A DNA stretch of 46,498 nucleotides from Lenisia limosa (GCA_001655205.1 LPNZ01003347.1:1-46498); one strand, 5' to 3'. Numbered from the stretch's first letter, positions 5,301-27,300 are shown. A program made the numbers and translations. The notes: generated by a model from the sequence alone, not told the origin.

Positions 5301-7250
5301 AAAACAGAAGTTGGCCGATGCCGCAGTAATGGTACAAGTGATGCCGATAATAACTTCGAGTAATGGTGCAGAATTCTCAGGCCAAAACAGGATAGCGATA
5401 TCTTGAAACCGTGAAGAAGCTCACATGGGTCTTTTCGAGGGTCAATTGCTGGACATGGTTCGCAAAGTAGAGCATACACTCGTCCTCACTGGAGTAGTTG
5501 GCGACAGTGTAAAAGATGGTAACAACAAGCAAAACTCACAACATCAAGTTAAATCTGTACAAAGACCACAATCCAAATGCCTTCAGTAGCAAAAGTGAAA
5601 CAGCATATTTGCGATTTCTGGCCTACTTGATGGGGTTGTATGTGGCAAGATTGCCTTCATCCAAAGGATTGTCCATGTAATTGATTGCTGTTCGCACGTC
5701 GTTGGCTGACCAGCCTTCACCACCCTGCGAATAATGAGGAATGTAGTTGTGTCGGACCATGCCAAACACAGGGTGTGTTGAGCGTTTTTTCATCCTCCAA
5801 ATAAGAACTCATATTTGTACCTATGCAGCAGATTACCTGTTTATCCATTCCTTCCTTCGCTCCTCCCTTTTTGATCTGCTCCGCTTCCCATTCTTGGAAG
5901 TCATCATCCTGTGTTGTCAGCAGACAAATAAGAATTCAAATTTCATCATTTGATCAAAGGCCAGAGCATGAGAGTATCAGCAGGGACATCTCTCAAGATA
6001 TCTTCTCTGGGCTATTAACCTGAACGAGCATACATTGAGAGCCGACATGTCAACATCTTTTGGTACTGTCGGTTGCTCTATGTTACCGAACTTGATCTGA
6101 AAACAGTCAGCACTCCAGAGCTTTTATTGAAAGGGATAAAACCATACGGATTTCTTTGATGCAACTCGGCCCTGTGCTTTTCGCCTCTTCAAAAGGTGCT
6201 CCTCCTTCCACTGCTTAAATTCATCCCCCTGCAAAAGTAAAAACAACAACAAAAAAAAAACTTGACATAACAAAACTTGGCCAAATTAATTAAATTCGAC
6301 AAAAGACTCGATAATAAGACACATACAGAAACATTTGCCATTCCACAAGACCTCAAACCTCAAGATTCTGCGGTAACGTAAGACCCTCTGGAATAACCGA
6401 CTGAGGAAGGGCGTGTGCGAAAGGAACCCTAAAAAAAGTTAACTCAACCCACGCTTGAGAAATAAAGATGGACTTGATAACAGACAGAAACACAGCTACC
6501 CCATGCAACGTTTTTTCTGTCTTTGGGGGGCTTTGCGGATCTGGCATGGGAGGAGGCGCGGATTGTGCCGCCTTGAGAGCAGCCAGACCGGCAGCGGAGT
6601 AGTCTGTTGCGGGTGGCGTGGAAGCAAGAGTGTCTTTGCGGACCTCGGGTCTGGGGGGGGGATAAAACATGGAAAAGCTCTTTGGCGGGAATTGTCGTTC
6701 TGGAGCGAAGACAGTGCAGAGAACAATTGAATAACAGCAGATAATAGAGAATTCAGAAAAACAAGATAGGTTCAAAGGCTTCTTCAAGATATAAAAGAAT
6801 GAATGACAAATAGAAGATGGCTGCACCATATGTCAGCGATAAAAACTCGATGCTAAGAACGCCGTCAGTAAATCTGTAACATTGACAACATCATAGCATG
6901 ACATTGAAAATTGTAAAAGTGAAGACTTTCCAAAATCAGTTGCAAGTCTCATTGAAACTTATTTTCAAGTATTCTTGAATCCTCCTACCCTTTTTGATAC
7001 TTTAGACTGGCTTTACTTTTGCGGATCTTGAAGACTGGCTCAGCTGCCTCTTCATTGCTGTCAAAATCCTGCTGGTGTAAAGATAATCTAAATATTCGCT
7101 GGTTCAAAAATGCGATCTAGAGTCATCTACTCAAGAGCGAGGGAGAAGACCAACATTGGAAGCTAGGGTGATCTTTCTGGTACTTGCAGACTTTTCTCCT
7201 TTTTTCCGTGGCTTCCTTTGTTTGATTTGTATTTCACCACCATTATCCAT
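2344..7250 (-). CDS. GCFC-domain protein (PAXBP1/GCFC2/ILP1/Ntr2-like splicing/transcription factor), about 20 exons
   Basis: Spliced exons give DFDSNEEAAEPVFKIRKSK, DDDFQEWEAEQIKKG, RLSFVDFIKQMFSTL, FKALVAYRQDAHKEL, EPELYSNLFMSSHLPLLASPFARRAMVDVDILE, PGFESYPWYQSLLAYG..DEDINLLPAVVEAVVVPKLETAMDGWYDLSS and RFGALVKLW, which match the GCFC family motifs in order. The 3' end is less certain. Confidence 0.8.
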
Positions 7251-8370: not shown

Positions 8371-8876
8371 TCTTAATAAAGAGCGGGGGAACCTTGGAGC
8401 CTCCCCCTATAGGGTCACCAGATTAGCTTTTGCTCTTAACCCCCCATACCAGGTACCTCTTCTCTTGTCTAATGATATATGATATAGTATATCGGTGTGC
8501 ATACATATGATAGTATATATATATTATACGTATAATAATACATAGAATGTGCTGTATACGTCTGATCTGTATGAATTGGAAGATATTATCGCGTTTGTCA
8601 ATGTGCTGAATTCACTAAAGCTTATTCACCATTTTCATATGCAACATGACGCATAGCTCCAAATCAATTTTTCAGCTTTGCATTACACCTCTCCCGCTAA
8701 TCAGGATATCCGGCCACCCAAAACTGTTACTACCATATAGCCTCTGTTATAAGGCTGAAACGTTGAAAACCCTCTATTTACAACAACTACTACTATACAA
8801 CCTAATAACAATACTCAACTGCAATATAATACAAACAATCAATTGGGTGATTCAGATGGCGGCGCTGGGGATTCGG

Positions 8877-11800
8877 TCAAGTCGACGGCTTCGATAGCTG
8901 ATATGAAGGGTTGTCCTTGGCAAGAGCATCCATCACCTTGAAAGTGAAAACGGTTTGGGATCAACTATTCCCCGCGCCTTCACACCTCTATGAGCTGAGG
9001 GAACGTGAAAGACTCCTTCTGAATGTCCGGGGCCTCCAAAAACGCCAAGAGATGGAATTGGAAACAGAAAGACGGCTAAAGAGAATGGGGAAATGAGAAA
9101 CACAATCAAGTATTATTAAAGTCAACCAGAGACGCATCCCATCATGGTGATGCGGACCCCCACCTGAGGCGCAAGGTCGGACAGAATTACTGTGATTTGC
9201 TCTCTTGCCTGCAATTATAAGATCAATAATGGAGTGTGCATAGAAATGCAGAGTAACCATTGCTATCCAGACACACCTCAGTAAGTTGATCCATAGTAAC
9301 AATTGGGGGTCGTCTGCTCAATTCTGAAGTGGACTGGCCCTTTTTGGTAAGTGAAAGCTGAAACGTGCCCCTTGATCTTTGTTAATATTATCAGTTTACA
9401 ACTCAATGCCTTCCAAAAGACCGCCCACCATCATGATGTTGACGGCCAATTTGACCCGGCCCGGAGCCTCGGAAATCAGGGCCCGACTATCTGAAGAGGA
9501 CAACGGCGGCGGTAGTGGCCTATTATTGACTGGGGGGTTATGGGAATTATAAAACCTCTTTGCCAAAGCAAGTCAATTCTTCTCCACAATTTCTCTGTTC
9601 GTACCCCCAAGACCAAAGACGTGTGACCCACCTGCTGAGCGGACCAAAGCCGAAACGGCTTTCAGTCCCCTCTTGACAACTAGGGGCAGACCCCCGGGGG
9701 CAAGGCCAAAGGAACCCGGGTCCTCAATAATGGGCAGGGCTATTCGGCTGAAAAGTAGTCGTGACGTCACTGAATAATAACGTAACGAGGGCTTTTCTTA
9801 ATATTGAAAAAAGAACATAATAGTGGAAAGAACGCTGATTTTGGAATTAGCATGGAGACGATTAGGATAGACCAAACCTTCAGGAGTACTGGAAGGGAAT
9901 CTTGCGTTTTCATCGTTGTTTACTTGCACTGCCAAAGAAAAGATCGGTCTACAGAAGGTGAGAAACTGGATCATAGAAAATACTATTATGCTAAGTTCTT
10001 AAATTAATCCCACCAAAGAGCATGAAACCCCTCTCTTATATCCACCCACTCCGGCAGCAGGGGGATGGCTGAGCAAACATCGTCAATGACCACTGACGCT
10101 AGGCTGCGGGATGAAACGATATCGAAATGAGGGTTTCATAAACAAAACAGTTAAATAGAAGCATGAGGGTTTCATATGGTGGGGGTAACAGTACACGCAG
10201 CACGTGACCCACTTTGCATAGACCGAAGGATGGTGTCCTCCAGGCGGCGGCGGAGGCGGGTTCCCTGTTCGCCGTCCTGTACTCGGGATATAGGGCTTCG
10301 TGGGGGGGATAGAGAGGACCTGGGGAGAGTGAAATGCATCCGTGTTGTAAATCGCTATATTTCCTAGTGCTAAAGAACTATCGATGAAAGGGTACATGAG
10401 GCCACGGACCTTGACAATAGTGTCGAGAGTTGGTTCGAGAACCGTGCACCAGAACTCATGACAATGCATCATGGTGGCAGTTAGCACCAGGGTCGAGGCA
10501 AAGGATCCACTTTTGAACGCCTGGCGACTTAACGCTACAGCATCAGACAAGTTGAACAGCTGACAAGTTGAACAAGCAGTTATCAGACAATTTGAACACT
10601 NNNNNNNNNNNNNNNNNNNNNNNNNNNNNNNNNNNNNNNNNNNNNNNNNNNNNNNNNCCGCCGTCAGCAGCAGCCGACTCAAGTCCGCTATCTGGAGGGG
10701 TAATGCAAAGAAAGCCAATACTAGTGCCCCGGAAGAAGGGAGGATACCTGGTGTGGCTCACGTAATTTCTGTTCATATTGTGCTGTGCGGAAATATTTAC
10801 TTATGCATGTACAAAGTATAACATGAAATATATGATATGTATCAAAGCAACAAACACACTTGTCATCACCTGCCTCCCCCCCACCTTGTCACTATTTCCT
10901 CGGCTCAGCTCCACTCGAGCTAGAGCCTCACCGCCAGCGCCGCAATAAGAAAACAGCGCCTCGCCTGAAGGGTGAATGTGCTGATTACTTTTGATTGGTA
11001 TGTGAGTTGGAGATTATTAGACAAGAGGCCCACCGAGGGGGGTCATAACGGGGCTGCTCGGAGCAGTGTACATTTTGTCAGTGACATAAGCAGAAGGTCG
11101 TTTGGAGTGGAACGTCTGGGGGTTAGTCGAGTTTAGAGTGGTGTACATACAAAATCAAAAGATTGAAAGCGAGAACTAAGATAAAGAGAATTTGACCAAT
11201 ATGAGCTTAGCGAGACAGCATACCTGGTTGGAAACGGCCTGCAAAATTCCGGTGAAAATCGTTTCTCGTGCGTCTATTTCTCGAACCTGATGAGTGAGAA
11301 TCCACATTTATCACCAAAATACGTATTATTTGTGCCTTTCTGGATGTGATAATTTGCTGTCTACCAAAACACTCTCAGCTGTATAACACNNNNNNNNNNN
11401 NNNNNNNNNNNNNNNNNNNNNNNNNNNNNNNNNNNNNNNNNNNNNNNNNNNNNNNNNNNNNNNNNNNNNNNNNNNNNNNNNNNNNNNNACATGGAGGGCT
11501 GCAATAACCTGGAAAGTTAACACCGGAACCCCTCGCAATAAGTAAAAATGTTGTAATTCACAAATGCACAAATGCACAAATGCGAACACTTACTGCTGTA
11601 TTAAAAAACAATAAAAAAAAAACAGGAAGTCCACCCAGCCCACTTCCGCATTAGAAGGTATCAGAGTCTCAACCGGGAGATCCAGGGGCGACGTAGAGGA
11701 TATCTCCTGTGGGGGGGGGGAGTAAAATGGAGATTTAAGAAACACAAAGCCCAAAATCAACTCTGTTGGCTGACAACACACGAGGGTTGATAACAACAAA

Positions 11801-14800
11801 ANNNNNNNNNNNNNNNNNNNNNNNNNNNNNNNNNNNNNNNNNNNNNNNNNNNNNNNNNNNNNNNNNNNNNNNNNNNNNNNNNNNNNNNNNNNNNNNNNNN
11901 NNNNNNNNNNNNNNNATACGCTTCAGATTATGCTCAACTCTCACCACCAACATTGCAGTATAACTTGACGTTGGACTGAAGAGACTTTGCCAATGCTTCA
12001 AGTGCCTCATTATCGTTGGTGTTACCTAGGGGGTGAAGACTGCAACTGATACACTCGATATCTCGATATATTCGAAGCTGTACTGGTCCAAATTGGAGTG
12101 TAGGAAGCAAAGCCAGGTATTTGAGAGTAACTTTCGTTCTTGTGATTAATATGTATCTTGATCTTGACAACAAAGAGGCAAAGAACCCCTCACCCGCACA
12201 GCCGACGACAGAGGAGGCAAGGAGTTGGCACGCAGTCTGCTGGGCTTGGTCTAGCGCCTTACTGGAGACCATTGGAAGGGGTGCAAGCGAAGGAGCTAAG
12301 GTGTTATTCGGTTCTTCCATGGCAATTGCCCACCTTTGAGGCTCTCCGGGTAAAGTCCATTCTGGTCTGGGTTGGACATTGCCGACGCATACACCCGGCC
12401 GAATGTCAGTGAAACCTGTACCGTGAGTTCACTTATTCCAACCCCCCATGATCCAGAAAACTCACAATATTCCCAACGGGCGACACTCTTGGCCACTTGT
12501 CGGCAATGGCGTGTTTGAGGCCGGCGGCAGCCGCTTGGAGGGGCCATGGGCAGCGGGTCGGATTGTTGACAACTGTCCGAATGGCATCGGATACGGCTTC
12601 ATGAAGGAGATCGTCCGAAGTGTACGGCAGGTCTGGGAGGTTATACCCGGTCGGCTTGGATCCATGATCACGCGAGTCAGTAGAGTAACAGCATGATTAG
12701 GTGGGAGCACGCACAAACTCAGCCAAATCATGAACTTGAAGCTCTCTATGACAAAGACACTTTTCTTTCCAAGCCCCCACCCCCACTTCTAGTGACGCCG
12801 GTCCCATCAATATCTGAGAGGGCTTCGGCGTTATCAAATACATACTCCATGGTAGGTGCCAACATCTGATAGGGGGTGAAAAGGAACTTTTAACCTTCAG
12901 TGCAGCTTGTCACATATTACTGAAACACCATGTATTTGTGTGTGTGCGTGTGAACTTCCATTTAATTGAAGACTCAGACATATCCCACCTCTTTCAAGTG
13001 TTCCATCAGCACGGGGGCAAGAACACTGTGTAAGACGTGCGCGGCGGCCGAGGGTCCCGCTAAAGCTAAACCTGGGGGGGGGGGGGNNNNNNNNNNNNNN
13101 NNNNNNNNNNNNNNNNNNNNNNNNNNNNNNNNNNNNNNNNNNNNNNNNNAAAAATATTGAAGTTAACCCTGACCAGTTGTTTTCAGAATATTAACCACAC
13201 GTATTGCACGCCAATATCCAACCTGGGGAGGGAGAGGTGCAAGCCTCATCATAAATGGCCGTCCTGACAAGATGCGGCGCCATATCTCGATACGCAAACA
13301 GCACCGCCAACGACGCCGGCACCAAGGCTTCAGATGACGTCATCAGAATACCGCGAGCAACCACCTGGGTGATGAATACATCAGACTATCTACTCAACAT
13401 CCCGCACCACCCAACATCCCCGCACCAATGGTCTCGCGTCCGGGGGCCCGGCGTTGGTCTCGACAAGGAGGTTGAGGAGTGCGTCTTGCCCGGGCGTGAG
13501 CACGAGCGCGCTGTCCTGAGCCAACTCCGAGAGAGACAATCCACCACCTTGGCGGTGAGTGTTTGCAGTGAAGTCTCTATTGAACCTAGGATGATACCAA
13601 AAGACACCCACTCTCCTCGTGATAACTGAACCCACCCACCCAGAACCAGCGTTCCACCTTCATCAGAAGAAAGCGACAATATTGAGTCGGATGCTTGGTC
13701 CAAACTAGCCTCAGCCCGAAGGGACTCGTCAAAGGTCTTGTCCTAATATGTTAAGTGTACTAAGGTCTGTCTTTTCCTAATATGGTAAGTGTCAAGTGCA
13801 TCTGCAATAGATACTCCCAAAAAAACAGTCCTGTTGTTTTCAATCTACTTCCCCTTCTCCAGCCGACCTGTAGACCCGTGTCATTGGGACCGAAGGAATG
13901 CAGCATGACACTTTTGAAGAGCTGCAGGAGTTAGACGGTAATTGACGTTCTTTAGCTCCTCACCCCCCACCTCCTCATCAACATGGTCCTTGGTGGCGTT
14001 CTTGTGGTACAAAAGACAGAACAGAGCCGTGGCGAGCAGCAGCGCCACAATCAACGCCGACATGAACCACAGAAACCAGGCTGGGAGGGGGTCTGCCGAG
14101 TCTGTGGCCGGGTAGCACAAGTCAAACGTCTCTCGATCTGAGGCATGAGTGTGTACCACATACAAGAAAGAGTCACATGACTAACCTTTTTCAGGAGTAC
14201 AGAGAATGGAGGGGGCGCAGAATGCCGAGGCTTCGTCCACTGTACTTGTGCACCAGGAGCAGTTGTTGAATGCTGGGGGTAAGGGATATCAAAAGAAGTG
14301 AAAGTGCTGAAGCAGAACAACTATGTATGGACTATGAATGCACTATGAATGCACTATATATGTACTATATTTGTACTATGAATGTACTAAGTATGTATAC
14401 ATACAATGTACATACAACGTATACATAATTTGTACATACAATATATATGTACATACAATGTATGGGTTGGGTCCATCGAATTTATGAGAAACAGCTCAAC
14501 AAAGAAAGCCCCCCCACCGCTTCTTGTCGATTCGGAGCAGCTGACACAATCCGCAAAAGAGCCACATGCCTGTTCAAGAAGCGTGTAGTCTGAAGAAATA
14601 AAATGTCTCGGGGAGGGGCGAAGATTTCATCAAACTGATTCGCAAAACAAAGCCAGCCAGTTGACCACACTACAACGCATTTAAGAGCAAAAAAGCAAGA
14701 CAACACACACCCACCTGGTTCACAAGTGGCATCTCCAAAGCAAACTCCCTCACAATCCATTGAGGAGTTGTATGGCCGGCCTGGGGGGAGATAAGTTAAA

Positions 14801-17800
14801 GATCTCACTGCCTGACTTAACTACGAATGAGCTATGGTCACCCACACACCAAGCCTACTGTTGTCACCCATTAAGCACCCACCTGTAGTGCCGCCAGTAC
14901 ATTCATCACAATAGTCCACTAATGCGCTTCCGTGGCAATCCCCACTAAACAGTAATACATAAGTGGCAATCCCCACAAAACAGTAATACATAAGTGGCAA
15001 AAAGATAAGTAGGTTATTAGGCTCAAGCTCAAACACAAGAAATGTGCCTTTCTAAATAACAATTAACCAATATTGTACCCCCCAACTTGCAATCCATTGA
15101 GCGGTTTGAGAGGATGGTAGCGCCCGGGGTATAACAGTCGCCACACTCGTCAGGAACCTATTGAGTCATTTCACTACGTAGATTGCTACCAACTAAACAA
15201 CTCGACTACATATCATCATACATGTACATGTACATGTACGTGTATATGTTCGAAAGGAGAAATAAGTAAAGGGTATGAATTGCACCAACCTGGAGGCCAG
15301 GGCATCTGAACACACAGAAAGACGACATTGGGAGTACCAAGTTCGGACACATCGTGCTGTTTGCCTGCAAATAGTGATAACACATAAGCATTTCAATAAA
15401 CTGGGAACAATCAATTATCAATTAAAGCAACAATTACATATTATATGATATTATTCAAAAACTGCCCCCCTGCATACCTGATATTCAAAAACTGCCCCCC
15501 TGCATACCTGATATCCTGGGGTTGGTGCTGGGCTCTCCATGGCTCCTGAACAATGAGAAAACCAGATGGAAAACAGGCAAAAGCTGAAGTGGAGACATTC
15601 AACCTACCCAGTTTAGCGGTGTGGCACTCGGACAAGGCATGGCACCATGCACAGTGCACACTGGATGTGCATTCCCCACAACTGCCCAATGTGGAACAGT
15701 CCGGCGCTGGGGTGTGTGACATTCAAATCAAATGAGTACATCGCTATGATAAGTTCTCTATAATACGATGATTACCCCTATGTATTCCTTATACCCCCCC
15801 TCGCCCACGGCATTGATCGGAAGTTGGTATCCAATTGTAGTCCGGGCCGGAGCAAGTCGTATTGTGCACCGGTTGGCATGTTTCACTACTTTCACACCAC
15901 CCGCAGTAGGCATCTGGATCGTGAGATCAGTAGAGTGAAATGAAATGTGGGATTGTTTGGATTATTTGACAATAAAACGCATTTCCGAGAAAAAGGATGA
16001 ATGAAAAGAGGAAGAGAAGAGAATAATAGAAGGATTGCTAAATATCATTGGGTACTTACACTCACCATTGTTACAGTCAGCACAAGTGGACAGAGTTGAG
16101 CAGTCAGGGCAACGGGAATGGTACCAATAGTCTGGTTCTGTTGTGTGCAGGGGGCGCGAAGAACTGCCCCTGGAAGTGGTGAATGGACCATAGTATAATG
16201 CTGCTTACCTCAGACACAATGAAGCCAAGGGGTCCCAACCACAACGCCTGTCGTCAACACACGTGGCACACGCAACACTAAATCGGTCACAATCAAAACC
16301 ACACAAATTAGACAAGTTCTTGGAAATTTACCCACTTTTGTTCGCAAAGAGGACATGAAGAGGCGTCCCAGAAGGAGATTGGACAAGCGAGCGGCAGAAC
16401 TTCCGCATTAGGCAAGTGTGACGGATATGCTTCGGATGAGGACCCGGGTAAACAGGTCAGTGATGACTCACACCAGCCACACCCTGGTGAGTGAGAAGAA
16501 AGTTTGAAAATAATATTGATGATCCAAACATTATTCATACCAGGGCTTGTGTCACACTCAGAGCATGTAGTGAAATTACTACAGAGAGGACCTACAACAT
16601 CAAAGGGATAAATCATTACATCAAGAGTAGTATTATAACCCCCAGGTGTCCTCTATAACCACTCCCCCTACAGGTGTCCCCGTCAGTCAACAATCCGGCC
16701 GAACAAGCCGAACCGAACTGGGTAGAACCGTTTCCAAAAGTGCAAAACTGGCTACTTGGACACCAAGAACACCGCGGATCTGGGCGGTTACAAGGGTATC
16801 AAAACCCAAAGAGGAAGGTCGCAAATAGCCCACATACCCGCAACACAGTCACCACAATTAGCGCTGGCGCAAGAAGAGCACGAAGCGTAGAACCAAACAA
16901 GAGGGTCGACAGAGGAATGATAGGCCCCGGCAGCCGTGCCCCTAAAGTGTAATTTATCATCGCTATCACATCTTAGCCCACCTTAAGCACGTGCCTCCTC
17001 CGGCGTCCCATCCACATCGCTCATCTGAGGAACACTCTGAGCAGGCCGTATACACCCCACATGTGAAACAGGTGCTATTGTCCCAAGCCAGGGCTGGGCA
17101 TTCACGGGGCGTATAAGGCTCAGAGCGGCCTGATTGGTTAATAATCCCTCATGAACCATTGTTTTGCGAACGACGTTTCTTGGTTTCAAATCAACACCTC
17201 TTGCAAATGGCTTACAAAACATTAGAAGGTGAAAAACGAACAAATGATATCATATCATATACTATAGGTAATAGTCGTAGGTCTTCAAAAAACACTTTTG
17301 TTGAGAAATCCTTTATTGTTATCCATTTCACAGGTTCAACGATATGCCATACCCGGTAAGCACTGCTGTGAGGAATCGCACCATCCACACCCGTAGGTCT
17401 CTGAACACTCCGAACAACTGCTAAGGGAGGGGCAATCCAAACCTACAAACCATGAGGCTATTGAGAAATATGAAAGAATCTATGTGAAATGAGAAATGAA
17501 AGCTCAGAAGATTCAAAAACACTTTCAAGAATGAAGATGCTTGCTGAAGACAGCATACACTGGTTATTTTCAAAGGTGTAGTCCAAACATGGCGTCACGT
17601 AAGGCTCAGTGGCGTCTCCGCCAACACACGACGCAGACGACGCGCACCATCCGCAGAGGGGGTCTGTGGGATGATAATGTGTCATCAATCCAAGATATCA
17701 ACTCTACTGAAACCACCAAATGTACTTTGAGGGTTGTAAAAAGTGACTGGTTTTTGCAACAGGCACTGTTATGGATAATTAAACAATAAAAACAGACCAA

Positions 17801-20600
17801 TATCAGCGCCACTAACCCATGCCACAAGCCGTGCATTCTGAATGAGCGTTACAAATGGGGCATTCATTGAAGGCCCACGCTTCCGCCCTTAAACGGTCAA
17901 GTGAAAATGACGAGTTTTACAGAGTAACATTACGGGGGTACAATCGTCTGTACACCAAACAGTGAGCACCATCCCTCATACACGCATTGAGACGTTGTGA
18001 GGTCCACTTTGGTTTGTTCCCAAGGGGCAGAACTGAAGGACGTTACTGTGTACGTTTCAGCTGAGGGTGAAGCATTCTGGGGGGTGAGGATGGTAAGGCA
18101 GGATTGCTTAATTAGCTGTAAAAGGCCAAGTCTATGTTGCAAAACACCGCAGCGAGGGAAGAAAGGCATACCAAACAAAGCTGCGAGAGAGAGCACCAGC
18201 CACAACCGGTGGCAGCGGCGCACTGGTCACATTCAGTTAATTCGCTGCAGTCACTCCCTAAAGGATTAGGGTTTGGAACATCAACAATTCCCTTGAACCA
18301 AAGAATCTCATACTCCACGACTTTACCAATCTCTGAAAAGCCTACCAGAGCTACGAAGAGTGGACGAAATATTCGAATCAGCAACAGCCACAGTCAACGA
18401 CTCAACCACAATGAAAGCTGTCGTGGTTGACGGCAGGGCAAATTGAACTGAGGAATAAGACCGCAATGAGCAATATGACAATGTGGGCTGCATTTACATG
18501 TAAAGTAACTTACCAGCACTTGATGCGTTTGCTGACACTGAAAGAACATGGGGAGTGTCACATCCAAAAACGACTGAGGTCTAAAACTGTCAGACCAAAA
18601 ATACCGATAACAATCAAAAACGCAACGGACTTTTAGAAACATAGGAAAATAGGTCCTGTACCAAACGAATAAACAATATCGGCATGGTCTAAAAACGTAT
18701 CTAATATGAAAACAGAGCCGTTCGCACCTCAACGGAGCCGCTGACAAGGCTGGCCCCGGCCTGTGGTACACAAGGCAGTGTGATGGCTTGAAGATTCGAC
18801 ACCAGGGGGGAGTCCTGCGACGTAAATGAGAATGGATTGAAAACGACAAAAACCAAGATATAAACTCCTTTGAATTCGAACACGAGTGTACATTATGCCC
18901 AGTTACCCCCACAGTTGCAAAGGTGAGAGCATCTATAGTTGCAATACTCCAGGTTCCTGGGTAGTAAGTCTATAGTTACAATACTCCAGGTTCCTGGGGG
19001 GTGAGTCTATAGTTGCAATACTCCAGGTTCCTGGGGGTGAGTCTTTTCTTTGGGTACTGTTGGGGTGAATTGCTCTTCAGTCCTTCCCACCAGTTGTTTC
19101 CTCTTTAGCCGTGATTATGACGGAAGATGGACTTGTGAGAGCCAAAAACTTCAGAGAATGATCAGCCACCACCTTGAGAATCAGAAACAGCTTGACATGT
19201 CCTTAAAACTATACATGTGACAAACACCCACTCTGTAGGATGTGAATGAAGAACCTCCATTGAAGAAGGTTGTCAAATCAAACTGGGAAGTGAGAAGAAT
19301 CTCAAAGGGACTTTCAACAAATACACCATCAGAGTGTTGATATAAAAACTAAACAAGTACATACTGGCAGAAACACATCTCATATTGTCGGTCAAAATTG
19401 ATGGAAAAGATGTAAAACAAAGTCAATTACGTCAATGATCAAACGGTAACAAACCTTCAGGAGAATACCACCGTTCACAGCCAAATGATAGCCAGTTGTG
19501 AACAAAATAGACCTATGCAGTGAGGTGGAGGGTTACGTAGAACTTTGGAAAATAGAATTGATGTAACAATTACATGTTTTCTCAAGAATCACCTAGTCTG
19601 TGGCACGTACACAGCGCTTTGAACAAAACCTGGACCAAGTTTATGCGTGGTTGAGATCTAAGTTGTTACTGCTGTAGTGATAATATATAAGGTAGGTAAA
19701 CTCCATACCTTAAACGTTGAAACGGGTATGACAACTATTTGGGCTTCTCGCTCGTTGGTGGCAAAAATAACTACACTAAGAGGATTAATACCTACAATTA
19801 TCTCGATTAGTGCGGTCATTCAGAGGAACTATCAAATTGTGAGGATATCCACCATATTGATTCCAACGCCTCCACATGATAAATCCCCAAGGTCAAGACT
19901 CACTTTTCAATTGGGTCGTAAACAGCTGTAGAGAACAAGGAAATGGAAACTGTTTCCAACTCAGTCTATACAGTCAAAAGATCAGAAGATCAGAAGAGGA
20001 AGCTAACAGCCCAAGCCCATCTGCAAAGCAACCTTCGTGAAGTAAAACACTTACCCTAAGCCAAAACAGTACAAAAGGCCCCTCACCGTTGCTCCTGACG
20101 CAAGTGAGGTTCGATATATTTTGCCTGGATAAACTGCAGAACTTGAAGCTAAAAAGTTATCATCTGTGCTACCCGTGAAACATAAGAGAATAGATGTTGA
20201 ATAAATATCTTACCGTAATAAGCAAAGCCATCACCAGGTGTAAGGAGGCATGCCAAGTCCTCAATACTTAGGTCAAATGAACCTGTAGGCATTAGGTTGT
20301 TTCAGATAACGCTTTACTATCACTCTTAAATCCCCTCACGAAGAACATTTAGTGTTGCATTGAAGATGTGGAGCGTAGTACCTCCTGATTCTGAAGTTTG
20401 AGATCAGCAGATTCGTTAACAAGGAAGTGCTATTCAAGGTTTGACGATGCCGAGACCAACCTGTCAGGGCCACCCCCAAATTCTGCTCGGCATCATAAGA
20501 GGCCTTGACAACGGCAGATCCCAGGCCAAGTGTCAAGTCATGTGTTGATGCAATACCATGACTGTCGCGTAAGAAGAAAGCATTAAATAAAAACAAAGTT
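8877..20600 (-). CDS. Single-pass receptor-like protein: beta-propeller, ~6 PSI repeats, Cys-rich DCxG repeats, TM helix and two tandem RasGAP-fold domains (5' end approximate)
   Basis: Blade motifs (DGFAYYG, YPGKIYRTSL, STAVYDPIE..VVIFATNEREAQIVVIPV, QSAVYVPQTRSILFTTG) at ~19.2-20.5 kb. PSI units (CSELTECDQCAAATGCGWC, DPLCGWCASSASC, DPRCSWCPSSQFC, CSNFTTCSECDTSPGCGWC, DAYCGWCESSETC, CSTLGSCGECTSSVHCAWC) at 15.5-18.3 kb. DCHGSALVDYCDEC and MDCEGVCFGDATC at 14.7-15.1 kb. TM WFLWFMSALIVALLLATALFCLLY at ~14.0 kb. RasGAP motifs at 13.4-11.7 kb and again at 10.7-9.6 kb. Stop TGA at 8877-8879. Confidence 0.85.
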
Positions 20601-21300
20601 GCTGCAATTTGTGATTTTACAAATCCATTTTATTCAGCGCGGGGAAGGGATATAAAGTGTAAAAAAAGTTGAAACAACAAAGATAATGGAACGTTTCAAA
20701 ACAACATCGGATCTTGGGCTGTTTTTTTAAAAAAATACGGTGATAAATATGATCAAATATTCTTATACATATTCGAAAAATATAAAGTAAGTCATCTGTT
20801 ATTATAACAGTTATTCGCGCAAAATATTGAAGGGAGAGGAAAACAGGCAGGAGCCTCCTTCACTATCATATTAAATATTAACTTAACACAACAACTCAGG
20901 TAGGAGAGCAAAAAAAGCGGCCTTGAATAAACATACAAACCTGGCAGAGGCAATTAACGCAAATGATATCACAAGAAACACTAGCCTTTGAACTAAATAA
21001 CTGTAAATCATTCTTTAATTTACGAAAAAAGCCTCTATAAGAACAAAAACTGTTGATAACTCGATAACGAATTCATTATTCCTAAATATGTTATTATAAT
21101 TAGTAACAATAGTGCTAAATATATCGTATTCAGTATAGAGAGGATCCAAATGTCAGAAAAAAACGAACCTAAAACTACATTGATCATCGATCAAGTATAC
21201 ATGAACAAAATCAACAATGAAAAGTTGTAAATAGGCAAATAGGAGAACTTAACAGCATAACGCTTTATCGATATTGAATTATTAACAGGCCTTAAACACC

Positions 21301-24300
21301 ATGAAGGCTGGTTTTTCAGGATTCAAAATTGGTGGTAGTGGAGCTAAGACGAAGAAGAACCCCAGAGCCAACATTTTCATCAAGAAGGAGAAGCAAAGAG
21401 TTGGTTGAGTTAAGGAAACTCTCTTATTGTTTAGGAACAAAGAGATCAGGAAGAGGCTAGCTCTGTTATTGACACCTTTGTCAATTCTTTCGATTCCAGA
21501 TATGCTGAAAAGCCAACAACAGCCGGATTTGTCTCCGGTGGAACCTTCAACCCTGAAACCAACCAGATGGACGGCGCTCCCAAGACACTTCCTCCCCCCT
21601 CTGCTCCCCCTGCACCTTCGAAGGCGTTGCTAGCCTCTATGGGACAATCAAATAAAAATGTTGGCTCCTCATCATTTGCTCTCTATTGATGACAATGGAC
21701 TTTAGATATTCCTGGTATTACTTGCAAGGATCATTTCTTTTCATTAATTACCCTATTTATATTTTCAAGTTTGTTCACATTTTTGAATATTGTTATATTT
21801 CTCCCGCTTATTATTCAAAATCATTCCTCTTTTGCAAGATAACCTCAGCAGACCACGCATGTGAGTAGTCCCCCTAAACCCAAGCCAGCCAGTTTTGCTG
21901 GTAAATCTGGCTTCTCATTTGGCGGCAAGCCTGGAGGTACGAGGACTTTGAAGCAATGGAAAGTTGTTTCAACGGTTCATCATCTCAGTTTGATCTAAAA
22001 ATGAACATCACAGCCAACTTCTAGAACTTGATTGTCAATTAACATTTCTGATGTATATAGAGAGAAAAAAGCCCACAATCAAAAGGGCCTTCAACCCTGA
22101 TGAGCAAGAGGTAAGCAAGGTTCTCCTGCTTAATACTCCCAAAATGAATGCTATTGTTGGCTAATTGATATTTGCCTTCGCAATTAGCTTCAACTAACAT
22201 GCAGATGGACACGCCGAAGGTCCAGCCAAAACGCTCAAAAAGGAACATCGACTCCTTTTTGGAGGAACTCAAAGCGTGGGACTTTGAGCTTACTTCATTA
22301 TGAATGGAGCTGATTTGTGACGGATAAGGAATACACTATTATTTGACAACAATCACTCTAATTTATTAGGGAGCAAGGGGAGCGTGATAAGGATTCCCAC
22401 TCCAGCAGGTTGGAATGGTACATATAAGGATTCCCACTCCAGCAGGTTGGAATGGTACATATAAGGATTCCCACTCCAGCAGGTTGGAATGGGACATATA
22501 AGGATTCCCACTCCAGCAGGTTGGAATGGTACATATAAGGATTCCCACTCCAGCAGGTTGGATTGGGACATATCGTTTTCACATTCTCTCTTTTTCTCGT
22601 TTCTAGCCACTCTTCATCTTGCTCCAGCCATTTTTACGAAATCAGCCATTCACACAGTCGCGGCGATGAGGGTTCTAACTTGCTCCACGGCCCCACCAAT
22701 AACTATACCGTGAAGGTGAGTGGGATATTGAAATGTGGTAACGGGATTTTTAGCTTTCATGACACCCACGAGCAAGTTGCATCCAGTCTTATTGTTTAGC
22801 CGACCTTTTCCAACCCAGTGGTTGAGGAGAAACAGCCTGAACCGGATGATGAAGAGTCATCAACGAACCTTTATGTTGGTAACCTTTCTCTCAGCGTTTG
22901 TGGGGCAGTCCTGATTGGCGGTATCGTATGCCACTTATTGATGTGTTTCTGAATTCTTGCGCTTAATTATTGATATTTACCCTGCAGGTGACTGAAGATG
23001 ACCTATCAGATGTGTTCTCAAGATATGGTCCAATCAACTCAGTGAAGGTACGGAGTCCAGGCAAAGCCGTTTACTGCTTGGTTATACTGAATTCCTTCTT
23101 TCACTTCTATATCTAACCCTTCAGATTATGACGAAGCGTGAAGAGAACCGGCGGCGTAACTGCGGCTTTGTGTCCTTTGTCGAACGCGTTCACGCGCTGG
23201 ACGCTCAAGACAACCTCGAAGGTCGGAATGGCGAGGTGGATCGTTATTACTGGTCAATGTTCCATCACAATCGCATTATCATATGAGGGCTTTTCAAGTG
23301 AGGTATAGTTTGACCTCCCCCCCCCCCCCNNNNNNNNNNNNNNNNNNNNNNNNNNNNNNNNNNNNNNNNNNNNNNNNNNNNNNNNNNNNNNNNNNNNNNN
23401 NNNNNNNNNNNNNNNNNNNNNNNNNNNNNGGAAGACCCGTACCTTGGGCGACAGAAAACATATACGGTGTGCTGGGTAGACTAGAGTACAAGCCCAGGAA
23501 ATAGTTTTTATTACGCTCACGCCACAGTTCATCCGAAGTGGCTGAAGCGGGCCGGTGTTCCCGAGGGTGCCAAGTCCTGCGTTGTGTACACCCCGCCGCC
23601 GGATAGGAAAAGCCTTATTGACCGCATGGTATGGGACTTTTGATCGCTACATTTGCAATGAACTTACAGGGACAGTCCCAGTTAACAGAGTTGACATTTT
23701 AGGTTCGGCTTGTTCTTCGCTACGGAAAAGAATTTGAGGTGAGCTATGCAATGAGAGGGGAGAGGGTTGAGGTGATTCCGTTTCTTACTACCCATAACCT
23801 TTATCTCGATTTAGTTTAACCGTCCTCTTTTTCACCACCTAACTGGCCCAGAAAATGGTCTTTGAGAAGGAATACACCAACCCAGATTTCGACTTCCTTA
23901 AAGTCCCACTGTGCCTTGAAAACAACTACTACAGGTATCGCGGTGCAAAGATGTCCTTTGCCATTTTCCGTAATACCCCTCTATATATAGCAATGAGAAA
24001 TAAAATAAGGTTGTATCTGGAGCTGTCCACTATAAACATATCGTACCTACTGTTGTATAAAAGTACGTTGCAAGAACCATGATATGGTATGCTCAAATGG
24101 TGTCTTAGTATCCCACCATATCTTCATTGGAATGGCTCAGATATTGGTGTAAGCATCTATTGGTGAATCTCATCCCCCCCCCCCCTNNNNNNNNNNNNNN
24201 NNNNNNNNNNNNNNNNNNNNNNNNNNNNNNNNNNNNNNNNNNNNNNNNNNNNNNNNNNNNNNNNNNNNNNNNNNNNNNNNNNNNNNCTGGTCGCTAGATG

Positions 24301-27300
24301 CACAGCAGCTGGTGGAGGACGGAGAGTGGTACGTGCCACCCCCATGTTCGCGGGGTCTCTTCACTAGTGTTTTTGCTCTAGAGCGAATATGCATGTAGTT
24401 GCCTTGGGTTATCAGTACTAACGATACAGACATTGCGGATGACTCTGTTGATGAGGTTCAAAAAGAACTGTAAGTTGATGTGCTAATTGTGTTTTTTGTA
24501 ATGTTTCCTCACTCTTCACATGAATGTCCTCCTCACACTCCCCACCCCCAGATCATCTGAGATCAAACTGAGAGCCCATCGTCGCGTTCTCTCCAATGAG
24601 GATGCAAAGGAGTGGGAGGACCTTTTGGCCTATGTCTCAATGGAGCGCGAGAGCGTACAGCGCTGTATGGGATTCGCTTTGGACAACGCCGAGTATTCAG
24701 AAGATGTAGGCGGAAGTAACTTCTGGACCTTGCAAACTGCCGAAAGAAACCAGGCTTGCTGAATCTTTTTGATTGACTCTCACTTGGTTATGACAAAACT
24801 AGGTGGTTGATGTGCTGATTGAGTCTCTCTGCCTCCCCGAAACATCTCTTCCCCCCAAGGTAAGGATGTGCTTTATATTCTGGTAGTTTTTTTTTTTGAA
24901 AAAAACCATGATGTGTTGACGCACTCTTTAGCTGGCTCGCCTCTACGTTCTCAATGATATACTCTTCAACACATCCTCCATTGCTAAGAATGCCCACAGC
25001 TACCGTACCCTGTATGCCGGGCTGCTTGCTGTCTTTTAGGCACTTGTTCTTCTTTCCTATTCCTCGTTCATGTCTATNNNNNNNNNNNNNNNNNNNNNNN
25101 NNNNNNNNNNNNNNNNNNNNNNNNNNNNNNNNNNNNNNNNNNNNNNNNNNNNNNNNNNNNNNNNNNNNNNNNNNNNNNNNNNNNNNNNNNNNNNTCCTCC
25201 AGAATCCGAGCTTCCAGTGTGACAAGACGGGTTTCTGGTGGGCTGGATGTAATGTGATCGGAGACATACTGGTCAAAAATCTCGAATTACTAACTCTATT
25301 GTAGAGGTGATCAAGTGCTGGGACAATTGGAGCCTTTTCCCAAGCTTTATCATTGAAGACCTCAAGTGAGCCTTTTATTTTCGACCGAAGTGAATACCAT
25401 GGTGTTCTTTAGAACATCCGCCATCATATTTTTCCGTCGTTCACCTTCCTTACTCCCCTCCCCAGTACGGCGTTGAATGCCAAACGTGAGGAAATTGAAG
25501 AGGCGCAGCAGAAGATCATTGAAGAGGAAAGCGTTTGGTCAATGTCAAAGAGGAAAAAGATGGAAAGAAAGAAGGTGGGACTCAATTCTTTATAATGAGT
25601 TATTTAAAATGAGTGATTTCGGGCTAACTCCCAAGGCTGAAGAAGCTCAGAAAGCCCTGACGGATGAGGTAATGAAATCGAACCAGTTGACAGCACTTCT
25701 CACACCCCCTGGTTCTCCGAGCAGTGAAGGTATGTTTCTAGCCTTTTTATTTCTCTTTTTTTCTTTTTTGGGTTATTTATTAGTGATTGCAAGTCTAGTA
25801 TCTTGTTTTTGTATTTCTGATATTTTTTCCTCCTTTCCATTATTCATGTGATTCTGACTTTTAGCTCTCACCCCACCCCCCACACCCCCGGGTAACCTAA
25901 CCTTCACGGACATTGAAACGCCGGTAAATGAGAAGGTTGTCGGCCTGTCCATGCCCCCCATGCCTAGCGCTTCCAATGGTAGGGGGGTTATCTATCTGAA
26001 GTTTTCCTTAACAGTGCTCTTGGTATTGTCAGATTAAGCCTTCATTCAAAATCCAACCTTATACTTGAGATGCTATGCCTGGAGCTACCCTAGCTGACCC
26101 GAGTCCTCTGGCTGGAACCACACCCTCAGGTACTTTCAATTTCTCTATTATGCAAATGTAGCACTGTCGAAATGTTATCTATTACATGCCAGTATGAAGA
26201 GATGTAAACAAAAATAATATCTTCCAGATATACCTGGTTCTACCCCAATGCCCGGTTCTACCCCAATGCCCGGTTCCTCCGCCATGCCCGGTTCCTTCGC
26301 CATGCCCGGTTCCTCCGTTATGCCCGGTTCCTCCGCCATGCCCGGTTCCTCCGTTATGCCCGGTTCCTCCGCCATGCCCGGTTCTACAACTATGCCCGGT
26401 TCTACAACTATGCCCGGTTCTACCCCAGGTAGGATCCTTTCAAATGCATATTCAGCTCTTTTCTGTTGAGTTGGTGTGCTATTTCTGTTGAGTTGATGTG
26501 TTCTTGGATTGTTAACCCACCCCCGTTGAACTGGACTGATCCAATTAGACATGCCTGCTCCTTTTGCTACTCCACAATTCTACCCCCAGCCCCCTATCCT
26601 CCCAACACCTGCTCAGCAGAGTAGGATGGATTTGGCTTTCAAGGGCTTTAATCTATGAGTGCTCTCCGTTTAAACCATGTTATATATGTACGTTGTATGA
26701 TTAATTCATTGGTGTAATGAGAAGTGGTATGGACTTTTTTTTAACCGAATTAGTCCCACACAATCAACCCATGGTCTTACAAAAACAAAGCGTGAGGGGA
26801 TGGATGAGTGTTGTTATTGTTGCTTTAAATGATATTTGTGTATTTTTCAGTACATGCTTTTGAGATGACGTTTCAGGCAAAGGAAGAGAAGGACATGGCT
26901 GCCTTGTCCGCCTCCCTTGCACAGGATAAGGCCAAGCTATTGGTAGGCAATCACCCATCTATGTTGATTTTCGTTTCAAAAATTATGATATGCTATTTTT
27001 CTTTGGCTTTACTGTCACTAATTTTTTGCTTACTGACACTTTCAGAAAACGCTTCAAGGCTAATGAGTTCCTTTAGATTTTTTCTAGTTCTTGCTGTATA
27101 TTATGTTGTCGTGATAGAAGTCAATTTACACACCCAGTCAACATTGAGTATTGTTTGTTGTTATTTGATAGTTGTATGGGCTAATCCTTATGGCTAATTA
27201 CTTGCTCACGTGCAACTGCCGTTTTTAGTTGTTTGGCTTTCGGTGCAAGTCTGATATCTTGGGGCCGTTTTTATGTTTTAATATGATTTTACAAGTCCCA

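Follow-up and report, generated by a model that had tools for sequence, protein, structure and literature searches.

Lenisia limosa is a breviate, and the breviates are single-celled relatives of animals and fungi within Obazoa. Six-frame reading of a 46,498-nucleotide stretch of its genome (GCA_001655205.1, LPNZ01003347.1:1-46498; the window, from whose first letter all positions are counted) revealed a gene on the minus strand that runs from about 20630 at its N-terminal end to about 8840 at its C-terminal end and is split into short exons, more than 40 in number. The gene is real and expressed, is rich in introns, and encodes a membrane protein with a stalk of PSI domains and, on the inside, RasGAP-homology domains, following a plexin-like plan. 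It contains a PSI array, a single transmembrane (TM) helix and two regions with profile-level RasGAP homology, here called GAP1 and GAP2, and the spliced reading frame is unbroken from the helix through both of these domains. The parts of the gene are as follows.

18346-20629, minus strand: tentative N-terminal extracellular region of ~300 residues, from three-frame displays, with in-frame GT-AG introns at several junctions
14186-18257, minus strand: stalk of ~10 PSI repeats and two other Cys-rich modules (~14944-14715), in ~17 short exons
13947-14137, minus strand: TM exon, with a single hydrophobic helix (14087-14007) followed by a basic stop-transfer stretch
13411-13921, minus strand: juxtamembrane region of ~125 residues, exons 13921-13868, 13742-13548 and 13524-13411, from an in-frame junction search
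11489-13385, minus strand: GAP1, RasGAP-homology domain 1, from in-frame junctions and profile matches
11286-11224 and 11115-11034, minus strand: linker exons between GAP1 and GAP2, in phase and with canonical GT-AG introns, giving a linker of ~70 residues
9429-10964, minus strand: GAP2, RasGAP-homology domain 2, from RNA-confirmed junctions and profile matches
8843-9428, minus strand: C-terminal tail with alternative junctions and a possible stop near 8843, from the Viterbi path at low intron penalty

Stalk, helix and cytoplasmic gene model

The exon structure was drafted with an unguided Viterbi exon chain combining codon log-odds with GT-AG introns, which recovers the RNA-confirmed junctions. 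A codon model bootstrapped from long open stretches proved useless, and one derived from hand-picked exons succeeded with the PSI and GAP parts and failed on the N-terminal part, which is richer in AT. In the spliced draft the interval from 18257 to 14186 holds about ten PSI repeats of the CxWC type, lying back to back with no space for IPT domains of ~90 residues. In Pfam searches eight separate exon pieces either matched PSI (PF01437) best or matched no other family (E 1e-5 to 2e-2), and three of these pieces exceeded the PSI gathering score even though introns cut each PSI. The matching pieces, all read on the minus strand, are listed here.

18115-18393, 17461-17697, 17339-17479 and 16969-17148, minus strand: PSI-matching pieces 1 to 4
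16619-16798, 16311-16652, 15792-15926 and 15444-15722, minus strand: PSI-matching pieces 5 to 8

An earlier reading of the same DNA (the original prediction) had counted about six PSI repeats; the array stands and its number is raised to about ten. The single TM helix of that reading is also recovered. Its exon and the 48-nucleotide (nt) intron upstream (14185-14138) are present in spliced RNA, where one contig joins 14273-14186 to 14137-13995 and so also covers the last stalk exon (14272-14186). The TM exon is followed by a micro-intron at 13946-13922 that can be read either as 25 nt with GT..AG ends or as 22 nt with GT..TG ends (...CTG|CAG); both readings are in frame and differ by one Gln codon. 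A 3-nt ambiguity of this type at the acceptor might also account for some of the GT-TG micro-introns described from the L. limosa genome.

The cytoplasmic part was modeled with 22 curated exons from the TM exon to 9429, which are separated by 21 introns, all GT-AG and mostly with GTGGG or GTGAG donors and YAG acceptors, and which encode 816 residues without a stop. With each of the three intron penalties tried, the unguided chain passes through the two GAP regions; it includes linker exon 11115-11034 at every penalty and linker exon 11286-11224 at the lowest only, and no RNA contig covers either of these two exons. The juxtamembrane introns are 25, 125, 23 and 25 nt long, and some of the micro-intron boundaries are ambiguous. 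The exons of the two domains are the following.

13385-13223, 13071-12989, 12865-12787, 12632-12466 and 12415-12334, minus strand: GAP1 exons 1 to 5
12295-12194, 12025-11952, 11706-11644 and 11508-11489, minus strand: GAP1 exons 6 to 9, the last with a further 46 nt in an N run (whole exon L122:291-356)
10964-10885, 10691-10658 and 10534-10213, minus strand: GAP2 exons 1 to 3, the second with a further 72 nt in an N run (whole exon L122:1069-1174)
10103-10050, 9948-9878, 9769-9632 and 9529-9429, minus strand: GAP2 exons 4 to 7

The 816-residue model was built on merged gap-free sequence. DNA contigs of run X1 revealed wrong lengths for three of the four N runs, and all four gaps were filled from an independent ENA assembly, of which two gap-free contigs were used: L121, which spans window 22300 down to ~11775, and L122, which extends from window 11798 down past the window start. 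The gaps were resolved as listed below.

13087-13149: true length 42 nt, intronic (GT at 13222; C13 tract and AG at 13072), from L121/L122
11802-11915: true length 74 nt, intronic, the meeting point of L121 and L122
11390-11488: true length 60 nt with a G12 run, concealing 46 nt of exon in frame
10601-10657: true length 103 nt with a G13 run, concealing 72 nt of exon and the start of the next intron

Since two of the gaps conceal exon sequence, gaps of this assembly should not be presumed to be non-coding. Across the gap at 10601-10657, the splice at 10691 and the exon start at 10534 are exactly 106 nt apart in an RNA contig of run X2, in agreement with the L122 sequence and with the frame kept. 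On the minus strand the gaps coincide with homopolymer runs, namely G13 (10601-10657), G12 (11390-11488) and C13 (13072-13086). Tiny introns together with such poly-G and poly-C assembly gaps conceal large multi-domain genes of the L. limosa genome from ordinary annotation.

RNA confirms four junctions of the gene, namely introns 14185-14138, 10884-10692 and 9631-9530 and the one that ends at 10535, and an RNA contig also ends at the predicted donor 9428. For GAP2 this support comprises two complete introns, the exon start at 10534, the 106-nt exon over the gap and the splice at ~9428. The RNA contigs are 183-237 nt long, and RNA coverage of the locus is very low.

The assembly break within GAP1 lies at a further feature.

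11746-11801, no strand assigned: high-copy repeat of ~56 nt in the intron between GAP1 exons 12025-11952 and 11706-11644

Summed DNA-contig depth over this repeat is ~1.1e5, compared with ~33 in its flanks, and 2394 contigs map there. It breaks both assemblies, is also present in three short RNA contigs, and found no family in an Rfam search; possibly it forms one end of a mobile element that is very abundant.

Ahead of the PSI array there is probably a beta-rich sequence of ~300 residues, to judge from the candidate exons. This region opens with a hydrophobic, signal-peptide-like stretch near 20600, is lower in GC content than the rest, and its exons are not picked up by the codon model.

~20629-20461, 20282-20214, ~20168-20087, 19965-19905 and ~19783-19715, minus strand: candidate beta-rich head exons, part 1
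~19514-19455, 19348-19232, 18814-18728 and ~18487-18346, minus strand: candidate beta-rich head exons, part 2
18932-19042, no strand assigned: 37-nt tandem DNA repeat in three copies, from a repeat search, inside a 417-nt intron

By eye and by in-frame junction search most junctions of this exon chain were closed, but none was found between ~19715 and ~19514. Eight exon pieces of the head (46-63 residues each) gave no significant match to Pfam, Sema included, and the sole match listed for them was Kelch_1 with E 0.13, under its cutoff. The peptide GTWSIATID, which occurs three times and might be taken for propeller blades, was ruled out as such, being encoded by the 37-nt repeat in a different frame each time; the top-scoring junction (19231 to 18815) leaves the repeat out. 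With the eight pieces unmatched and the one apparent blade repeat being intronic DNA, the N-terminal beta-propeller of the original prediction was not confirmed. Other short tandem duplications, 30-37 nt long with 2-5 near-identical copies, occur at 14932-14993, 15452-15511, 22387-22573 and 2602-2663, the first two within introns of the gene described here, and together with the 37-nt repeat they resemble the outcome of a recurrent duplication process.

RasGAP homology of the cytoplasmic domains

In order to compare the two domains with a RasGAP profile, reference loci were collected with the DNA pattern FLRF..PAI.SP, which retrieved 120 metagenome loci and had no match in viral contigs. Ten long open reading frames (ORFs) among these loci were verified by Pfam as RasGAP (E 1e-11 to 3e-66), and their domains were combined with four database proteins into a profile of 14 sequences and ~335 columns, representing domains of the NF1/IRA, GAP1 and DAB2IP types. 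Searched with HMMER in a one-sequence search space, GAP1 scored 15.1 bits (E 6e-7) and GAP2 8.4 bits (E 7e-5), and in neither case did any of 2000 shuffled sequences reach the score. By hhalign, GAP1 aligned with E 4e-5 over 273 colinear columns (template 11-303 of 336) and GAP2 with E 2e-5 over 235 colinear columns (template 21-257), whereas all 32 shuffled controls remained at or below 3.5% probability. When the profile was run against 1949 six-frame open stretches of the window, the best match was a GAP1 exon. The GAP1 sequence on the far side of the break encodes the last helices of this domain, and their addition moved the end of the alignment from column 263 to column 303, which provides independent support for the join across the break.

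As a check on the chosen junctions, unspliced open stretches, for which no splicing choice is made, were also aligned by hhalign. The four pieces gave the following matches, and three unspliced GAP1 pieces are colinear on the template.

9576-9797: GAP2, template columns 231-276 (FLR region), E 7e-4
12436-12696: GAP1, template columns 187-230, E 3e-3
13194-13385: GAP1, template columns 90-130, E 0.08
12299-12598: GAP1, template columns 235-255, E 0.7

No RasGAP match was obtained with single exons of the GAP regions against Pfam or with the GAP2 finger exon against PDB sequences (phmmer), because the exons are too short and too divergent, and look-ups of a 71-residue exon and of the 128-residue ORF P0001 in the ESM Atlas returned only noise. 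With significant profile similarity over the whole domain, both regions belong to the RasGAP superfamily (PF00616 fold) at the profile level and are very divergent members of it. The two RasGAP-fold domains that had been proposed for this gene are therefore borne out at this level by the HMMER scores, the hhalign alignments and the shuffled controls, as is the proposal that the GAP domain is duplicated rather than split, since each copy aligns colinearly along a whole RasGAP profile.

A RasGAP that has lost the finger arginine retains little or no catalysis but may still bind the GTPase, as the IQGAPs do. In catalytically active RasGAPs this arginine is found in an FRxN(S/T) loop, and neither domain has an arginine at that position. 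The finger position of GAP1 is occupied by Ala (13060-13058), in the same register by HMMER and hhalign, and there is no arginine anywhere in its finger loop; that of GAP2 is occupied by Lys (10514-10512) according to hhalign, and four residues upstream of it lies an Arg. Both domains retain the arginine of the FLR motif, as F-G-R in GAP1 (Arg 12397-12395) and as F-S-R in GAP2 (Arg 9746-9744), and in each it is followed by a PAI.SP-like segment. Because GAP1 has lost every arginine of the finger loop and kept that of the FLR motif, it is more likely to bind GTPases without catalysis, by analogy with the IQGAPs, and GAP2 could likewise be a binder or could be a GAP whose activity is weak or unconventional. 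Catalytic GAP activity appears doubtful from the residues at these positions. The suggestion of the original prediction that the protein connects extracellular ligands to Ras/Rap GTPases thus agrees with the layout, but with Ala and Lys at the finger positions a connection by way of GAP activity is doubtful.

A probable single receptor and the alternatives to it

We favor, with moderate confidence, the reading that a single type-I membrane protein is encoded by the locus, with the PSI stalk outside and two RasGAP-homology domains on the inside, most likely a receptor that holds GTPases. From outside to inside this protein would comprise a beta-rich head of ~300 residues, a rigid stalk of ~10 PSI cysteine knots and two Cys-rich modules, one TM helix, a juxtamembrane segment of ~125 residues, and two tandem divergent RasGAP-homology domains separated by a linker of ~70 residues. 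It may act as an adhesion or contact receptor whose cytoplasmic part would keep GTP-bound Ras/Rap/Rho-family GTPases at the membrane, so that clustering of the ectodomain by a ligand would alter which GTPases are bound or switched off there. Such clustering would follow the logic of the plexins without plexin ancestry being demonstrated.

A number of observations weigh against this reading. Ahead of the signal-peptide-like stretch near 20600 no start codon was found, and the C-terminal tail allows alternative junctions. The assignment to one transcript rests on the unbroken spliced reading frame and not on RNA, no RNA contig spanning either the link from the TM helix to GAP1 or that from GAP1 to GAP2. 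The overlap between L121 and L122 is only 24 nt and lies within the high-copy repeat. Read on without splicing, the frame past the last GAP1 exon runs into a stop 25 codons later, and an in-frame ATG follows ~250 nt downstream in the second linker exon (11115-11034). The RasGAP pattern influenced the choice of some junctions in both domains, so that the profile scores are somewhat inflated; with the unguided draft GAP1 matched the profile with E 3e-4 and GAP2 gave no match, and the two finger exons by themselves had no significant match to it. Direct comparison of GAP1 with GAP2 is marginal (E 0.02-0.08), so that a recent duplication is not supported. Finally, a phmmer search for homologues with a 164-residue stretch (11937-12428) returned only the query itself, a negative that says little on homologues because ~100 residues of the query are an in-frame intron.

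That the locus holds a single gene we nevertheless consider likely, and the link from the TM helix to GAP1, which covers ~700 nt with tiny introns and no alternative start, is much safer than that from GAP1 to GAP2. The second link is where the best surviving alternative applies, namely that two genes follow each other on this strand, one for a PSI-TM receptor whose end comes after GAP1 and one for a cytosolic protein consisting of GAP2 only and starting at the ATG in 11115-11034. The read-through stop and this ATG are what such an arrangement would need, the linker is without RNA, and the same region contains the contig break and a poly-G run of uncertain length. Between the domains, however, four consecutive good GT-AG introns keep the frame and the exons they separate are stop-free, and two genes would leave linker exon 11286-11224 without a role; we regard this alternative as unlikely.

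Improbable in our view is an explanation in which the cytoplasmic region is unrelated to RasGAP and chance motif matches were amplified by a RasGAP-like choice of exons. The bit scores are indeed low (15 and 8), no exon passes the Pfam or PDB sequence searches and the finger exons alone yield nothing, but the shuffled sequences never attained these scores, each domain has a colinear hhalign alignment of more than 230 columns, the unspliced pieces fall on the right columns (E 7e-4 and 3e-3), and three GAP2 junctions were taken from RNA rather than chosen. There is slightly less to be said for an assembly chimera, in which the GAP2 side (L122) would come from elsewhere in the genome, or for a decaying gene or pseudogene: the very short overlap runs through a repeat with ~1e5 summed depth and RNA coverage is very low, yet the window scaffold and the independent ENA assembly agree on the flanks, the sequence past the break supplies exactly the C-terminal part that GAP1 lacks, the frame is intact over 816 residues, and spliced RNA exists for both sides.

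Other features of the window lie outside this gene. The next gene on the same strand begins only near 6650; it occupies 6650-2746 on the minus strand, is acidic and rich in Pro in its N-terminal part and looks conserved in its C-terminal part, and is unrelated to RasGAP. A weak, FLR-like match of the RasGAP profile within it (4096-4049) was rejected as chance. At 26193-26444 there is an 18-nt tandem repeat of ~14 units, which on the minus strand encodes a run of EPG(I/M)xx hexapeptides in a 125-residue ORF (26175-26552).

Comparison with plexins and other families

To our knowledge, plexins are the only well-known receptors with a RasGAP-type domain directly behind the membrane. The breviate protein shares with them the plan of a type-I receptor in which PSI domains outside are followed by one TM helix and, inside, by a juxtamembrane segment and a domain of the RasGAP superfamily, and thereby the tethering of a GAP-type domain at the membrane to an ectodomain that can be clustered. 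It is, to judge from its domains and residues, not a plexin. In place of the alternating PSI-IPT units of plexins it has ~10 consecutive PSI repeats, and Pfam found PSI on eight pieces and IPT/TIG on none of those scanned; instead of one split GAP domain it has two complete RasGAP-like domains, no exon piece matching Plexin_cytopl; and where plexins retain both catalytic arginines, the finger arginine is lost in GAP1 and GAP2 and the second is present in both. Neither Sema, on the exon pieces scanned, nor RBD was detected, and the lineage lies outside Choanozoa. The original prediction, which suspected a plexin-like protein outside the plexins and found no IPT domains, agrees with these results.

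It is accordingly very improbable that the gene is a true but extremely divergent plexin orthologue with a degenerate Sema head and with both GAP-like domains derived from the split plexin GAP: the overall plan is common to both and breviates fall within Obazoa, but Sema, IPT/TIG and Plexin_cytopl are matched by no exon piece, each domain is colinear with the whole RasGAP profile, finger and FLR regions included, which indicates duplication and not a split, the finger arginines kept by plexins are absent, and plexins have been found only in choanoflagellates and animals, with an origin in their common ancestor (PMC6374515, PMC8011033).

In a literature search no report of a PSI-TM-RasGAP protein from breviates or from other protists was found. 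Such an arrangement has either arisen repeatedly or existed in simpler form before the plexins, and each of these options is relevant to the assembly of contact and adhesion signalling ahead of multicellularity. The second option would take its fullest form if a receptor combining a PSI stalk and a TM helix with a RasGAP-type domain tethered at the membrane was already present in the common ancestor of breviates and opisthokonts and the breviate protein were a surviving 'pre-plexin', a scenario to which we assign a low probability. Plexins would then have gained Sema, IPT and RBD on an older scaffold, rather than all being assembled anew in the choanozoan stem, and the breviate GAP domain would have been duplicated and have lost catalysis.

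IQGAP1-3 and Dictyostelium DGAP1/GAPA have in common with the breviate domains a RasGAP fold without the finger arginine; they do not switch off the GTP-loaded small GTPases that they bind, and GAP1 probably works in the same way. As scaffolds of the cytosol, IQGAPs carry CH, IQ and RasGAP_C domains and have YYR in place of FLR, whereas the breviate protein is transmembrane and keeps the FLR arginine; CH, IQ and RasGAP_C were not seen on the exon pieces scanned with Pfam. Tandem arginine-less GAP-like domains would provide a new example of a pseudo-enzyme serving as a membrane-tethered docking site for GTPases. With the canonical families p120GAP, NF1/IRA, GAP1 and SynGAP/DAB2IP the two domains share a colinear alignment that includes the P..LR, FLR..PAI.SP and LQ.LAN regions, and they differ from these in the missing arginine finger, an identity of 11-15% (hhalign), the tandem duplication and the attachment to a membrane receptor.

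On the extracellular side the layout resembles the stalks of integrin beta and Sib-type proteins of Amorphea, in which PSI and Cys-rich repeats likewise precede a single TM helix, and breviates have integrin machinery (bioRxiv 10.1101/2020.04.29.069435). The protein described here has no beta-I/vWA domain and no NPxY tail, and in contrast to the short tail of those receptors it carries a GAP-like cytoplasmic part of ~800 residues.

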